From Macrostomum lignano (Eukaryota), in the NCBI GenBank assembly GCA_002269645.1, contig NIVC01000099.1, forward strand, positions 1 to 64,000: a stretch of 64,000 bases of DNA, in the 5' to 3' direction. How positions within the stretch are numbered: the first letter of the stretch is position 1; the number at the start of each line of letters is the position of its first letter. Shown piece by piece: positions 45,011 through 63,427 of this stretch. The notes under the pieces are model-generated. The model was not told the origin of the DNA. It searched no databases and saw only the letters and a list, made by a program, of their open reading frames with translations. The position numbers and the translations under genes are program-made.

Positions 45011-46156
45011 ATCCTTATTTTGGTGCTGCAGGTGCGGGCCCATGACAATTGCCCGGCGATATTTGCCTGCAGTGCAGATTTTGTCTGCATTGCCCTCCAA
45101 TGTTTAGTACAGTGTATGTCTTAATAGAGATTTACCCGATCCTCATACCAACGTTTTGATCACAGAATATACTATGCGTTTTGATAGTAACTGTATATCA
45201 AATTCATATTTTCTTGTAGGCATTCCCCAGTTCTATATACTGTACATACATGCAGCGGTACAGTACATGATTCATGCCGTGTCGCTTTGTCCCCCAAATC
45301 TATTTATTAAGACTGCGGTACTCCGGATTGGGGGTGGCAATGCAGACAGAATCTATAATGCGCTGCTGGAAAAAAATTTCTGAGCAAACCTCGGCGAGCT
45401 TTTTGTACATATCTGGTTGCCTGTATTTCTACATAACAATGAATTGAAGTTGGTCTGTTAAAACTTACGACAATTAATTCAAATACAAATACATTAAAAT
45501 ATCCATGTTGATCTTTTAAAAAAATTGCATTTCATTAGAATCATGTCAATCAGTTGCAAGCTTTGTTGATCCAGTAATGTCTACTTCATGGTTTAGCCCG
45601 AATAGCTTTTAGAATGTACACACGCACAATGCATGTGCAAGAATATTTAATGTCCGGCTTAAATGTGATACAGTATGTGAAAGTACGTATTTATTAATTC
45701 GCTTCCAAATTCACAAGCATTGTAGGTCTTAAATTGCGATCTGGGTTAACTAAGAACCGCAAGACTGTCCCAGTCACAAGACTGAGCATTCATTTGGTGA
45801 CTCTAAAAGGGCCGTTTTATTTTTTCTAGTCCTCTACTAGATTAACGGAATAGTATTACAACTAGGGCCTAACCTCATTGATTAAATGAAGAATTGCTGC
45901 CAGAAATGGTTATTTCAATTGTAGGTTTAGTATTACATTTAAAATTTGATGCGGCAATGCTCATGCTGTCTGTAGTGTAGCTGCATTGTAGACTGAAATT
46001 GGCCCTACGTGTCGTGTTGCAATGTATTTACATGTAAACATGCAGTTAAGCATATTCACCAGTTTTAGTATCAATAAATTTAAAACAGACTTCCACAAAC
46101 GACGAACAGGAGCAGTTTTTAACGAAGAACGACAGCAAGCACAATCCGTATGTGGT

Positions 46157-46172
46157 GGCCCTGAAAAGGGCC
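46157..46172 (-). terminator. Histone 3' stem-loop of H2B
   Basis: AAAAC-GGCCCTTTTCAGGGCC-ACCAC. Confidence 0.95.
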
Positions 46173-46252
46173 GTTTTATCGTTCAGATTAGATTAGCCTA
46201 GGCACGGCTAGTTGATCGCCACTTTTACCAGACGCCTTGCAAATTGCAAAGT

Positions 46253-46618
46253 TTACTTGGCGCTGGTGTACTTAGTGACGGCCTTGGTGCCCTCGCTGAC
46301 GGCGTGCTTGGCCAGCTCGCCAGGCAGCAGCAGGCGGACAGCAGTCTGGATCTCGCGGCTGCTGATGGTGCTGCGCTTGTTGTAGTGAGCCAGACGGCTG
46401 GCCTCGCCGGCGATGCGCTCGAAGACGTCATTGACGAAGCTGTTCATGATCATCATCGCCTTGCTGGAGATGCCAGTGTCCGGGTGCACCTGGCGCAGCA
46501 CCTTGTAGATGTAGATTGCGTAGGACTCCTTCCTACGCCTCTTCCTCTTCTTGTCCGTCTTCGGAGCCTTGGCCTTGCTAGCCTTCTTGGCAGCTTTACC
46601 ACTAACCTTAGGAGGCAT
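46253..46618 (-). CDS. H2B: Histone H2B
   Basis: [41 protein letters not shown]; intronless; has a stem-loop. Confidence 0.97.
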
Positions 46619-47017
46619 TTCAACCGGATTTTCTAAAGTGATACAAACGAGAAAATATGTGATCAAATTGAGTGTAACTGCTTTTACTATTTTCACGCTT
46701 TATTATATATTCTGGGTAGGTGGACCAGAAAACGAAATTTTATCAAGATCGATAATTTCAAACTTTGTATCAGCCAATGAGGGAGCTCCAAATTTCTAGC
46801 CTTGGTAATAAGAGTAATTTTCTTATCACACTACTATTAGTGGCATGTAAAGTTTTTTTCTTTAAGGTCTTGGCGAAAAACGGCAGAAAAAAGGTTGAAG
46901 AAACAAAGAAAAAAGTAACTTGGTAAATGGTAATGGATACTTATTTCAGTGGCGGCGCAGGGGGGGGGCAGCTGCCCTCGGGTGACCACAGGTCACTGCC
47001 TTAAGGGGGGTGACCAC

Positions 47018-60014: not shown

Positions 60015-60395
60015 ATGGCGCCGAGAGAAGTGAGTGGCAAGGCCGCCAAGGCTGCGGTGTGGAGGGCTCACCACAGACCAGCAGCTGACCAGGGCAAGAA
60101 GAAAAAGCGCAGGAAAGGAGTCATACGCCATCTACATCTACAAGGTGCTGCGCCAGGTGCACCCGGACACTGGCATCTCCAGCAAGGCGATGATGATCAT
60201 GAACAGCTTCGTCAATGACGTCTTTGAGCGAGTCGCCGGCGAGGCCAGCCGTCTGGCGATCACTACAGCAAGCGCAGCACCATCAGCAGCCGCGAGATCC
60301 AGACTGCTGTCCGCCTGCTGCTGCCTGGCGAGCTGGCCAAGCACGCCGTCAGCGAGGGCACCAAGGCCGTCACCAAGTACACCAGCGCCAAGTAA
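60015..60395 (+). pseudogene. H2B-like pseudogene (or mis-sequenced H2B variant)
   Basis: Core is nearly identical to the H2B at 46253. A +1 insertion (AGGAAAGGAG) and a +2 insertion (CTGGCGATCAC) produce a stop at 60216-18. TATAAA at 59931 and stem-loop at 60453-60468. Confidence 0.8.
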
Positions 60396-61045
60396 AACTA
60401 TGACAAGTTTGAGCTACATGTAGCCAGCGAGTAGAAAGCTTTCAGTTAAAACGGCCCTTTTAAGGGCTATATATTAATGTAGCCATGGAATACAAAGTTT
60501 AAATATTTTAATCTCATCTGCGTTATCAAATGTCTTACTAAGCTATTAAAATATTAATATTGAACGATCTGTGCTTCGCTCGGACTGATTAATTATATGC
60601 AATTATATGAGTAACAGTTTTAAATGAATCAGATTTTTTTCTAAATGCTAAAAATGAGTTGCGTTGGCCTACTGTTTTTTAAATTAAGATTTGGCAAAAG
60701 AAACAAATCCGACAAACGGAACAGTCCGATAATTTCTCAGATCGCCGGCAAAGGCACAGAGAGACAGAAGTGGAAAAGCAGTTGCAGAGCATAAAATGAA
60801 GTTATAATTTTGTGTAAAAGCGACAGCTTTGCCAGCTCAGCAAACGCTTCGTTGCCGAAAGTTGGTTAAAAACAGAAATGCCTTCCGGAGTAAAAAGACG
60901 AATTAATTTCTCAAACAAGCATCAATAAAGTACAGTTTGACAGACGGATAAGGCAATTTGTACCCACGGATGCAAGAGGCGAATATCTAGGAATTGCACA
61001 CGACAGAGCAGATCATGAAGATAATAACAAAAAACTCGTTTTGAG

Positions 61046-62386
61046 CAGGGGTCGGCAATTTTTAACCCAAGAGTCAGATAGAGACTGCGGGCTGGAGGAG
61101 AGGAGAGGAGAGGAGAGGAGAGGAGAGGGGAGGATTAGAGAGAGGGGAGGATTGGAGAGGGGAGGATTGGAGAGGGGAGGATTGGAGAGGGGAGGATTTG
61201 GAGAGGAGAGGAGAGGAGAGGAGAGGAGAGGAGAGGATTGGAGAGGAGAGGAGAAGAGAGAAGGGAGAGAAGAGGAGAGGAGAGGAGAGGATTGGAGAGG
61301 AGAGGAGGGGAGAGGAGAGGAGAGGAGAGGAGAGAATTAGAGAGGAGACGAGAGGAGAGGAGAGGGGAGGAGAGGAGAGGAGGGGAGAGGAGAGGATTAG
61401 AGAGGAGAGGAGAGAAGAGGAGAGGGGAGGGAGGAGAGGAGAGGAGGGGAGAGGAGAGGACTAGAGAGGAGAGGAGAGGAGAGGAGAGGAGAGGAGAGGG
61501 GAGGGGAGGAGAGGAGAGGAGAGGAGAGGAGAGGAGAGGAGAGGGGAGGATTAGAGAGAGGGGAGGATTGGAGAGGGGAGGATTGGAGAGGGGAGGATTT
61601 GGAGAGGAGAGGAGAGGAGAGGAGAGGAGAGGAGAGGATTGGAGAGGAGAGGAGAAGAGAGAAGGGAGAGAAGAGGAGAGGAGAGGAGAGGATTGGAGAG
61701 GAGAGGAGAGGAGAGGAGAGGAGAGGAGAGGAGAGGAGGGGAGAGGAGAGGAGAGGAGAGGAGAGGAGAGAATTAGAGAGGAGACGAGAGGAGAGGAGAG
61801 GGGAGGAGAGGAGAGGAGGGGAGAGGAGAGGATTAGAGAGGAGAGGAGAGAAGAGGAGAGGGGAGGGGAGGAGAGGAGAGGAGGGGAGAGGAGAGGACTA
61901 GAGAGGAGAGGAGAGGAGAGGAGAGGAGAGGAGAGGGGAGGGGAGGAGAGGAGAGGAGAGGAGGGGAGAGGAGAGGAGAGGAGAGGAGAGGAGAGGAGAG
62001 GAGAGGAGAGGAGAGTATTAGAGAGGAGAGGAGAGGAGAGAATTAGAGAGGAGAGGAGAGGAGAGGAGAGAATTAGAGAGGAGAGGAGAGGAGAGGAGAG
62101 AATTATAGAGGAGAGGAGAGAATTAGAGAGGAGAGGAGAGGAGAGAATTAGAGAGGAGAGGAGAGGAGAGAATTAGAGAGGAGAGGAGAGGAGAGGAGAG
62201 GAGAGGAGAGGAGGGGAGAGGAGAGGAGAGGAGAGAAGAGAGGAGATTAGATTGGAGAGCTGAGAAGAGACACAAGCCTTGAGCGGGCCGGATCGGTATT
62301 GTGCAGTTTCAAAGGACCCGAGGGCCGGACAGAGAGGCTTTGCGGTCAGCATGTAAGACCCGTAGGCCGCAGTTCGCCGACCCCTG
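61046..62386. mobile_element. Charlie-like hAT MITE inflated by an internal (GGAGA)n array
   Basis: TIRs CAGGGGTCGGCAA / TCGCCGACCCCTG; TSD GTTTTGAG/GTTCAGAG (6/8 match); array at ~61095-62260. Confidence 0.75.
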
Positions 62387-63427
62387 GTTCAGAGTTAACA
62401 AAGAGAAAAATCAAGCTTTGCCTCATGTGAGGAGTGAATTAAAAGTACAAAAGGGAATTGAAAGCTGAGGCAATAACAGCGCGCTGGCAGGGGCACAAGT
62501 CACTACAAGCCCTAAAGAGGCTTGAAGTCGGTGAAGATCAGGTGTAGAAACGGCAAAACTTCCAGACGCAGCAGATAGTAAGGAAAAATTGGTTAAAAAG
62601 TTTAAACAACGAATAAACAAAACATGTTGGCTGTTGTATTTGCGTTCTAAGTCTAATAAAAGTTTCGTTAGTTTAAAACGGCCCTTTTAAGAACACACTC
62701 AATGTCGGCCAAAGAACAGAAGATTACAAGTAGGGCCAGGACAAGGACGCAAAGAGCAACCAGAACATTTTTTATTGAAGTTAAAGGCACAGCCAGCACA
62801 AGAACCGATTTACTTGAAGTGTTCGATTTTTCTACGAAAGATGAAATTCATTTGATATGACTTGGCAACTCCGAGCATGAGGCCCAGAAGCGTCCCAGAG
62901 AGTCACTCGCGTCGCCTCAGAGTCGTTGCAGGTTACGCAGTTAAAGTAAGAAAGCAGTGACTCCAGACGACTCTGAAGCAACGTAGAAAACTCGTCAAAA
63001 GTCGCCCACAGAGCCAATTTGAGGCGTTTTATTGTCTGCGATTCCGGGGCGACACAACCAAGTGACTCTGGAGCCGTAGTCGGACCTGAGGCGTGGTGGA
63101 GTCGCTGTAGAAGCACTGAGTTGCCTCTAGAGCGCATCTGCGTCACTTGATGAACCAGAATCGCATTTTGAAGTTATAACAATTCTACAGTCGCCTCTCA
63201 GTCGCATTGCAGTTGTTTGAGTCGTTAAAAAGTGACGACAAAGTCGCCAAAGAGTTGCAATGAGTCTGAAGCGGTTCTGGTTGCGGTAACGTTCTCAACG
63301 GGATGAAGCCCAGTATGGCAACCGAATGCGTATCAATTTTCAGAAAAATTTAGCAGCTTGAGATGAAAATTGCATTATAGGATTTTTAAAATCTAACAAA
63401 AACGGCCCTTCTCAGGGCGGTCCCACG

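Follow-up and report, generated by a model that had tools for sequence, protein, structure and literature searches.

Extra, partly decayed copies of the histone 3′ stem-loop around the histone genes of Macrostomum lignano

Histone mRNA 3′-end formation is among the best-studied RNA processing pathways, and in the usual picture each gene has a single hairpin. What, then, are the additional stem-loops that stand beyond the histone genes of the flatworm Macrostomum lignano? The question is raised by a histone cluster at 45.8–63.4 kb of the first 64 kb of contig NIVC01000099.1 (64,000 nucleotides, hereafter the window), which belongs to assembly GCA_002269645.1 (NIVC00000000, Mlig_3_7; PMC5730564). 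A first-pass annotation made from this sequence had listed five extra stem-loops, 358, 565 and 684 bp past the primary stem-loops of the H2B, H3 and H2A genes and two more past an H2B pseudogene, and had described all of them as lying on the sense strand of the gene with a variable 3′ arm. Our searches recovered the five extras at the same coordinates and distances, on the same strands and with the same 3′-arm strings, and in this window the sense orientation holds throughout. Together with further histone loci of the genome, 18 independent extras were counted, at five unlinked loci and for three histone types.

To begin with the reality of the copies, the string AAAACGGCCCTT has nine exact matches in the window where 0.01 are expected, a number reached in 0/100 shuffles. 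All nine fall in the histone cluster and none in bases 1–43 kb of the window. Exact string search places six on the minus strand (45807–18, 46166–77, 48491–502, 49056–67, 57028–39 and 57712–23) and three on the plus strand (60448–59, 62675–86 and 63399–410); they comprise three canonical stem-loops (SLs), the pseudogene's own SL and the five extras. In a k-mer scan along the SL, ten-mers of the 5′ half occur in eight to nine copies and those of the 3′ half in three to four, the sole exception among the 3′-half k-mers being AGGGCCACCA, which also matches a 23-bp minisatellite. When a 25-mer scan was allowed up to eight mismatches anywhere, no site with an intact 3′ half and a decayed 5′ half was found in the window or the further loci. 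A covariance model built from the eight primary SLs only (R1) was run over about 400 kb and recovered the same set of sites, with nothing else convincing. The shuffles, the k-mer profile, the symmetric mismatch scan and the primaries-only model rule out an origin by chance or ascertainment. Moreover, the extras are not assembly noise, since all nine window sites recur in two homeologous contigs (L003, about 95–98% identical, and L006, about 99%).

The three intact genes of the window share the same canonical signal, GAACGNT-AAAAC-GGCCCT-TTTC-AGGGCC-ACCACAT, and in the primaries (n=8) the core of the downstream element (HDE), ATGNNN or GTGCNN, begins 14 nt past the stem, except at the H2A of a divergent H2A–H2B pair, where the distance is 13 nt. 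All three primary modules of the window are on the minus strand. That of H2B (46148–46184; GAACGAT-AAAAC-GGCCCT-TTTC-AGGGCC-ACCACAT) scores 30.3 bits with the Rfam family RF00032 and 63.5 bits with R1, that of H3 (49038–49074) 33.5 and 66.6 bits, and that of H2A (57694–57730) 34.4 bits, above the gathering threshold, and 65.4 bits.

The extras depart from this signal in different ways. The copy past H2B (H2B-2, 45790–45825, minus strand; AAAACGGCCCTTTT-AGAGTC-ACCA) scores 21.4 bits with R1 and has a 1-nt loop deletion relative to its homeologue in L003 (TTTTAAGAGTC), with a weakened hairpin. The copy past H3 (H3-2, 48472–48509, minus strand; AAAACGGCCCTTTTCAGG followed by TAACCG) scores 30.3 bits with R1 and is identical to its primary at 35/35 positions through CAGG; thereafter identity drops to about 62%, and 7/500 shuffles reach the downstream alignment score. 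Beside it lies a duplicated piece of the H3 3′ untranslated region (UTR), at 48592–48639 on the minus strand, which is 47/48 identical to 49081–49128 and is separated from H3-2 by a 73-nt insert. As the first-pass annotation had proposed, H3-2 is the only extra to carry a duplicated 3′UTR; the duplication predates the homeologue split. Because the step in identity is so sharp within the stem, partial gene conversion of the upstream part is suggested. The copy past H2A (H2A-2, 57010–57046, minus strand; AAAACGGCCCTTTTAAGGGC-G) forms a 5-bp hairpin of −8.3 kcal/mol, is without ACCA and scores 16.4 bits with RF00032. It belongs to a recurrent form that we call class B, T-AAAAC-GGCCCT-TTTA-AGGGC-T, found at three unlinked loci.

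The pseudogene's own SL (psi-1, 60445–60476, plus strand; AAAACGGCCCTTTTAAGGGC-T) is also in class B. It matches R1 and scores 24.0 bits with RF00032, has ATAT in place of ACCA, and is followed by an HDE-like ATGTAG that sits 6 nt too close. By counting it keeps six pairs; the minimum-energy fold over a 48-nt context is a competing downstream stem. Further along the plus strand, psi-2 (62675–62700; AAAACGGCCCTTTTAAG followed by AACACA) was identified by exact match, folding and column comparison and has lost its hairpin. For psi-3 (63399–63419; AAAACGGCCCTTCTCAGGGC-G), exact match, folding and R1 indicate a 5-bp hairpin lengthened by AC/GU. In RNAfold, H2A-2 and psi-3 form the hairpin, and H2B-2, H3-2 and psi-2 do not. 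With RF00032 only psi-1 and H2A-2 are reported at E≤10, both below the gathering threshold of 34 bits. Since the stop codon of a convergent gene encoding TPR repeats lies only 9 nt from psi-3, this extra is antisense within the 3′UTR of that gene.

Four more unlinked histone loci were found by exact-protein look-ups, each in two to four homeologous copies. At a solo H3 (L001/2/5), the primary SL is accompanied by an extra 348 bp downstream and by two upstream on the other strand, within a 165-bp tandem duplicate. A solo H2B (L008/17) has downstream extras at 360 bp and at 2–7 kb, as well as two in upstream-antisense position. At the divergent H2A–H2B pair (L009/10/18/144), one extra follows H2B at 570–1000 bp, and a second, directed away from H2A, occupies the intergenic spacer; none was found past the H2A of this pair. 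Likewise, no downstream extra was found at an H2B beside a Rab11-FIP3-like gene (L014–16). Instead, two to four decayed SL-like modules occupy an intron of about 600 nt in the Rab11-FIP3-like gene (L015 15112–15714, minus strand), in the sense of that gene, 5 kb from H2B and on the opposite strand to it. Units of this array are 160–171 nt apart (about 165) and share no homology beyond their cores. The proposal that every histone gene has a downstream extra therefore stands for the window only; over all five loci, 6/8 independent intact genes have a downstream-sense copy.

The extras are linked to histone genes in position and in orientation. The roughly 45 kb of sequence within 3 kb of a histone coding sequence (CDS) contain 13–14 of them, and the more distant 100 kb or so contain five (p=2e-4). 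Apart from psi-1, 53 nt from the nearest CDS, they lie 420–7100 nt from any histone CDS, that is, beyond the usual distance of about 100 nt from the stop codon. Orientation away from the nearest histone promoter, meaning downstream-sense or upstream-antisense, is seen at 14/18 sites (p=0.03) or in 11/12 events (p=0.006).

To describe which parts of the signal have been kept, we numbered positions along the SL (15 is the fourth loop nucleotide and 21 the last nucleotide of the 3′ arm) and counted changes from the primary consensus across the 18 extras. Changes number 2/90 in the 5′ flank (AAAAC), 2/108 in the 5′ arm, 18/72 in the loop, 26/108 in the 3′ arm and 50/90 in the 3′ flank. The difference between the arms is significant (p=7e-7), also without the last 3′-arm column (14/90 versus 2/108, p=4e-4). 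Three tiers of conservation emerge, with about 2% of positions changed in the 5′ flank, 5′ arm and loop U's, about 16% in the 3′ arm and about 55% in the 3′ flank. In 14/18 extras the fourth loop nucleotide is A15 in place of the C15 of all eight primaries, and C21 has been replaced in 12/18, seven of which have T. The 3′ arm is nevertheless less variable than it appears, because AGGGC is kept in most extras, far above chance, and many C→T changes give G·U pairs. With G·U allowed, six pairs are kept in 9/18; at least five contiguous pairs occur in 11/18, and the stem is disrupted in 7/18. Most extras fold as a hairpin in RNAfold, and the H3b extra even makes an extended 8-bp stem. The description of the copies as half-conserved thus overstates the difference between the arms, for most of them are nearly complete hairpins rather than 5′ halves.

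The haplotype A15+T21 (TAAAACGGCCCTTTTAAGGGCT) is common to extras of three unlinked loci with unrelated flanks, and therefore requires either long conservation or convergence. Outside the hairpin, ACCA is intact only in H2B-2 and in the extra at L008 10787, and the GAACGCT block that precedes AAAAC in primaries is kept only in three C15-type extras. HDE-like strings follow several extras at 3–11 or 16–22 nt past the stem, an identification that is tentative for so low-information a motif. Spacers are altered in most, to 3, 3, 6, 8, 9, 9 and 11 nt as compared with 14 in primaries. Two extras in L016 (e-a and e-b) carry ATGCTTnACATT, the HDE variant of the nearby H2B gene, only 3 nt past the stem; in a third, e-d, TTAAATGATGT is perfect and the end of the 3′ arm and the spacer are scrambled. 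Since remnants of the downstream element and the HDE flavours of neighbouring genes are present, the extras are derived copies of whole local 3′ modules, consisting of 5′ flank, stem-loop, spacer and downstream element. What they have most consistently lost is the closing pair, the ACCA flank and the correct distance to the downstream element. Binding by SLBP depends on the 5′ flank, the stem and loop U1/U3 and can do without the 3′ flank. The lost parts serve cleavage and not the binding of SLBP, and the three tiers of conservation fit these SLBP determinants. In published work, the loop is contacted at L1 and L3, UUUA loops are natural and the reversed stem is unbound (PMC4604434).

What might such elements do? 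We tentatively favour, with confidence somewhat short of even, a reading in which they would be SLBP-binding and normally uncleaved hairpins that act on read-through and divergent histone transcripts. The extras keep what SLBP would read, namely the T-AAAAC flank, the GGCCCT arm, the U-rich loop and usually AGGGC for pairing, and are without the closing pair, ACCA and the 14-nt spacing that positions cleavage. When transcribed, they would be expected to form a hairpin that SLBP can bind and that is not cleaved in the normal way. Histone genes are heavily transcribed in S phase, and outward-pointing extras would lie on their read-through and divergent transcripts, where they could act as a weak back-up for 3′-end formation or termination, or could insulate neighbouring genes by trapping SLBP. 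Judged from the sequence, such a function is plausible, though unproven. In line with selection, the intron array has more old changes in the 5′ half than the promoter-facing extras (3/56 versus 1/196, p=0.035). A more ambitious version, which we regard as rather unlikely, would treat the form U-AAAAC-GGCCCU-UUUA-AGGGC-U, with no ACCA and the wrong spacer, as a dedicated class of element that is bound by SLBP, left uncleaved and met by sense and antisense transcripts alike; this would amount to SLBP-based insulation or termination around histone genes, undescribed in any animal.

The first-pass annotation had suggested that the extras are selected fail-safe or alternative processing sites, SLBP decoys on read-through RNA, or a DNA-level motif. 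It is borne out in so far as they are real, linked to histone genes and asymmetric beyond chance. A pure fail-safe for the same gene is insufficient, because extras also lie in upstream-antisense position (L001, L008, L009/10/18) and in a non-histone intron (L014–16), and it leaves both unexplained.

Several observations weigh against a present function in SLBP binding. Between homeologues, substitutions in the 5′ 14 nt of the extras (4/252, 1.6%) are indistinguishable from the neutral level of the aligned flanks (109/4968, 2.2%), as compared with 0/208 in primaries. With the 5′ half changing about as fast as the flanks, strong constraint at the present day can be rejected, a ten-fold constraint with p=0.0025; to invoke relaxation after genome duplication would be an ad hoc rescue. 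When column 21 is set aside, 3′-arm transitions do not favour G·U on the sense strand. H2B-2, H3-2 and psi-2 no longer fold as the hairpin, yet their 5′ half is perfect. Furthermore, 2/8 intact genes have no downstream extra, and four SL-like modules stand in sense within the Rab11-FIP3-like intron, where an active terminator would do harm.

The main rival is a neutral origin, which we consider possible if on balance doubtful. On this account the extras are fairly young local copies of 3′ modules of about 25–50 nt, made by tandem or inverted duplication or by templated insertion in a duplication-prone genome. Their asymmetry would arise from indels that are centred on the spacer and nibble at the 3′ arm while sparing the 5′ arm, and from partial gene conversion that refreshes the upstream part. 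The flank-like rate of the 5′ half is as expected, and its divergence of about 2% from the consensus corresponds to about one homeologue-split time. Changed spacer lengths in most extras, the break of H3-2 within its stem (99% identity upstream, about 62% downstream), the local copying indicated by the HDE flavour of e-a and e-b, and the density of minisatellites in the window and the other loci all agree with it. Against this, 14 class-B extras have no flank homology to any source, so that the copies would have to be only about 25–45 nt long and made by a hypothetical mechanism. Neither is there homology between paralogous loci in the intervals from SL-1 to SL-2. The prevalence of A15 among the extras and of A15+T21 at three unlinked loci, set against C15 in all eight primaries, would require that extras were copied from one another or that a sweep later passed through the primaries. 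In addition, no extra is specific to one homeologue, hence none has arisen since the split, and the excess of changes in the 3′ arm persists when column 21 is left out.

Less weight attaches to a motif acting at the level of DNA, in which a DNA-binding factor, such as one of the histone locus or of termination, would recognise T-AAAACGGCCCTTTT at the primaries as well, and the hairpin of the extras would be incidental. The linear 13–14-mer is indeed perfect even in copies with a broken hairpin (H3-2, psi-2 and H2B-2), and sites are found on both strands around the genes. This account is improbable in view of the retention of AGGGC in the 3′ arm, which is far above chance in most extras, of the strand bias relative to promoters and of a recent substitution rate that is not lowered. 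Moreover, no known factor is at hand beyond a resemblance to the Myb-like core AACGG.

Equally improbable is that the extras are plain relics of lost histone genes in neutral decay, an objection that the first-pass annotation had itself raised. It would account for the fact that psi-1, a pseudogene's own SL, is in exactly the class-B state, for a cluster without H4 and H1, and for orientations that match the usual tandem or divergent layouts of histone clusters. We searched for coding remnants with tblastn, using H2A, H2B, H3, H4 and the H1 globular domain (E≤10 in the window, 0.1 at the loci), and found none adjoining an extra; only the H2B pseudogene was matched, at 60088–60392. As no coding remnants adjoin them, the extras are not simply decaying genes. 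Some spaces are too short for a gene, as in the 165-nt array, and decay old enough to erase a CDS would have erased the 5′ half too, of which only 2% is changed.

Least probable, and hardly credible, is a dispersed repeat or mobile element that carries an SL-like hairpin by chance: the 264 bp shared at 81% by the L008 extras 10787 and 17521, the 165-bp tandem duplicate of upA and upB in L001 and the intron array speak for it, but in an all-against-all BLAST the similarity between extras is otherwise confined to a core of 18–30 nt, there are no copies in the 43 kb of repeat-rich sequence upstream in the window, and the gene-specific HDE flavours point to local sources. This bears on a further objection anticipated in the first-pass annotation, that of a dispersed repeat, since mutual homology of only about 20–30 nt places the extras outside any long dispersed repeat.

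Other candidates were rejected. U7 snRNA-like genes had been considered for Sm-like AAUUUGU strings after some extras; decayed downstream elements are the better reading of these strings, and no small nuclear RNA (snRNA) is detected with Rfam. Helitron-type 3′ hairpins or transposon ends would call for consistent terminal motifs or flanks, of which there are none. Sites that end within the 3′ arm and continue into T runs (L008 9034 and L009 9293) had suggested retro-insertion of 3′-trimmed mRNA fragments; remnants of the downstream element, which is absent from mature mRNA, and the histone-local placement contradict this. Finally, AATAAA overlaps or adjoins four to five extras, about as expected for AT-rich sequence, and poly(A) signals tied to the extras were discarded.

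How do the extras, if SLBP-binding hairpins, compare with known systems? With the canonical metazoan histone 3′ signal (SL plus HDE; RF00032), which is served by SLBP, the U7 small nuclear ribonucleoprotein (snRNP) and 3′hExo and from which they derive, they share the 5′ flank, the 5′ arm, a U-rich tetraloop and most of the 3′ arm. They differ in position, either 350–700 nt past the true processing site or upstream in the opposite strand, in being without the closing G–C pair, ACCA and the 14-nt spacing, and in scoring 16–24 bits with Rfam or going undetected where the gathering threshold is 34. In Drosophila, histone genes have cryptic downstream poly(A) signals that are used when processing by SLBP and U7 fails. 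These too are a second 3′-end signal a few hundred bases past the primary and could catch read-through; they are, however, ordinary polyadenylation signals, whereas in M. lignano the second element derives from the histone hairpin itself, in degenerate form, and similar elements also face upstream antisense. H2AFX (H2A.X) combines a stem-loop with a distal poly(A) site, and its long RNA is contacted by SLBP in more than one place (PMC4604434). It is thus likewise a histone gene with two alternative downstream 3′ elements, although its distal element is a poly(A) signal and not a copy of the SL. As for orphan or pseudogene SLs, psi-1 is exactly that, and the other extras are alike in sequence state. 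A genome-wide SL search in human found a single non-histone interval (PMC4604434), whereas there are about two extras per histone gene in M. lignano, without pseudogene bodies.

Searches of the accessible full-text literature returned no account of histone stem-loops that are second, downstream or degenerate, nor of histone 3′ ends in Macrostomum. The extras are to that extent undescribed and have been seen so far in one genome. As a cross-species test, identical-protein look-ups returned only this assembly; two Logan contigs of unnamed taxa have a single SL each, fasciolid H2B loci have no SL by Rfam, and a metagenome scan for AAAACGGCCCTTTT gave almost only bacterial terminator-like matches. 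If functional, about two additional SLBP-type hairpins per gene would show how read-through and divergent transcription are contained at extremely active S-phase genes, and would provide a natural separation between the half of the signal that SLBP binds and the half that serves cleavage. If neutral, they would offer a clean natural record of the asymmetric decay of a palindromic RNA signal in a duplication-prone genome. Transgenesis works in M. lignano (PMC5730564), and the idea is therefore directly testable.

Turning to the genes themselves, the histone H2B gene of the window (121 amino acids; 46253–46618, minus strand) was identified as an open reading frame (ORF) with a 100% tblastn match, and the identical protein is encoded at other M. 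lignano loci. H3 (136 amino acids; 49146–49556) and H2A (126 amino acids; 57823–58203), both also on the minus strand, rest on ORFs, tblastn and identical-protein look-ups. The H2B pseudogene (about 60016–60395, plus strand; ORF list and tblastn) has two frameshifts, an altered N-terminal tail and a TATA box upstream. By tblastn there is no H4 or H1 gene in the window cluster, and an M. lignano H4 did not surface in the H4 search. The H3 protein has unusual residues; an identical protein is encoded by a 918-bp soil-metagenome contig (L007), whose nucleotide sequence differs and has no stem-loop downstream. Because H2B coding sequences at unlinked loci (46253–46618 compared with 60096–60396, L008 and L009) are 92–97% identical in nucleotides and the UTRs and flanks are unalignable, concerted evolution confined to the CDS is suggested.

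The gene convergent with the H2B pseudogene enters the window with its C-terminal end (63428–64000, minus strand) and encodes a TPR-repeat protein of 1271 amino acids. The ORF is high in G+C and bacterial-looking in composition, yet it is annotated in all three homeologues. At the solo H3 locus, an ORF for a protein-primed type B DNA polymerase (Pfam DNA_pol_B_2, E=2.6e-28) lies 3–5 kb upstream of the gene (L001 5125–7149 and L002 4126–5658, both minus strand) and probably derives from a Polinton/Maverick-like element.

Bases 1–43 kb of the window are nearly all minisatellite arrays, which fits the very repeat-rich genome of M. lignano. About 25 different GC-rich and strongly strand-skewed arrays stand back to back at 1–38000, with scarcely any unique sequence. 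A REX1B-like ORF follows at 44091–44798 on the plus strand and includes three perfectly identical 72-bp (24-amino-acid) in-frame tandem repeats at 44245–44463. Foldback, inverted arrays resembling miniature inverted-repeat transposable elements, with units of about 20 nt of the CCCTAAATTTCACAA and TTTCACAAGGTCGAAA types, are found at 47107–47294, between H2B and H3, and at 12529–13199; they give spurious, below-threshold Rfam matches of plant-miRNA-like kind. Between H3 and H2A lies a 5.2-kb minisatellite (50325–55510, plus strand), with about 225 copies of the 23-bp unit AAAG(A/G)GCCACCATGTCAAACATT. Each unit contains AG(A/G)GCCACCA, equal to the SL 3′ arm plus ACCA, and then TGTC. The array may have arisen by amplification of part of a 3′ module, in which event no other 3′ half is known to stand here without its 5′ half; alternatively, the match may be a coincidence.

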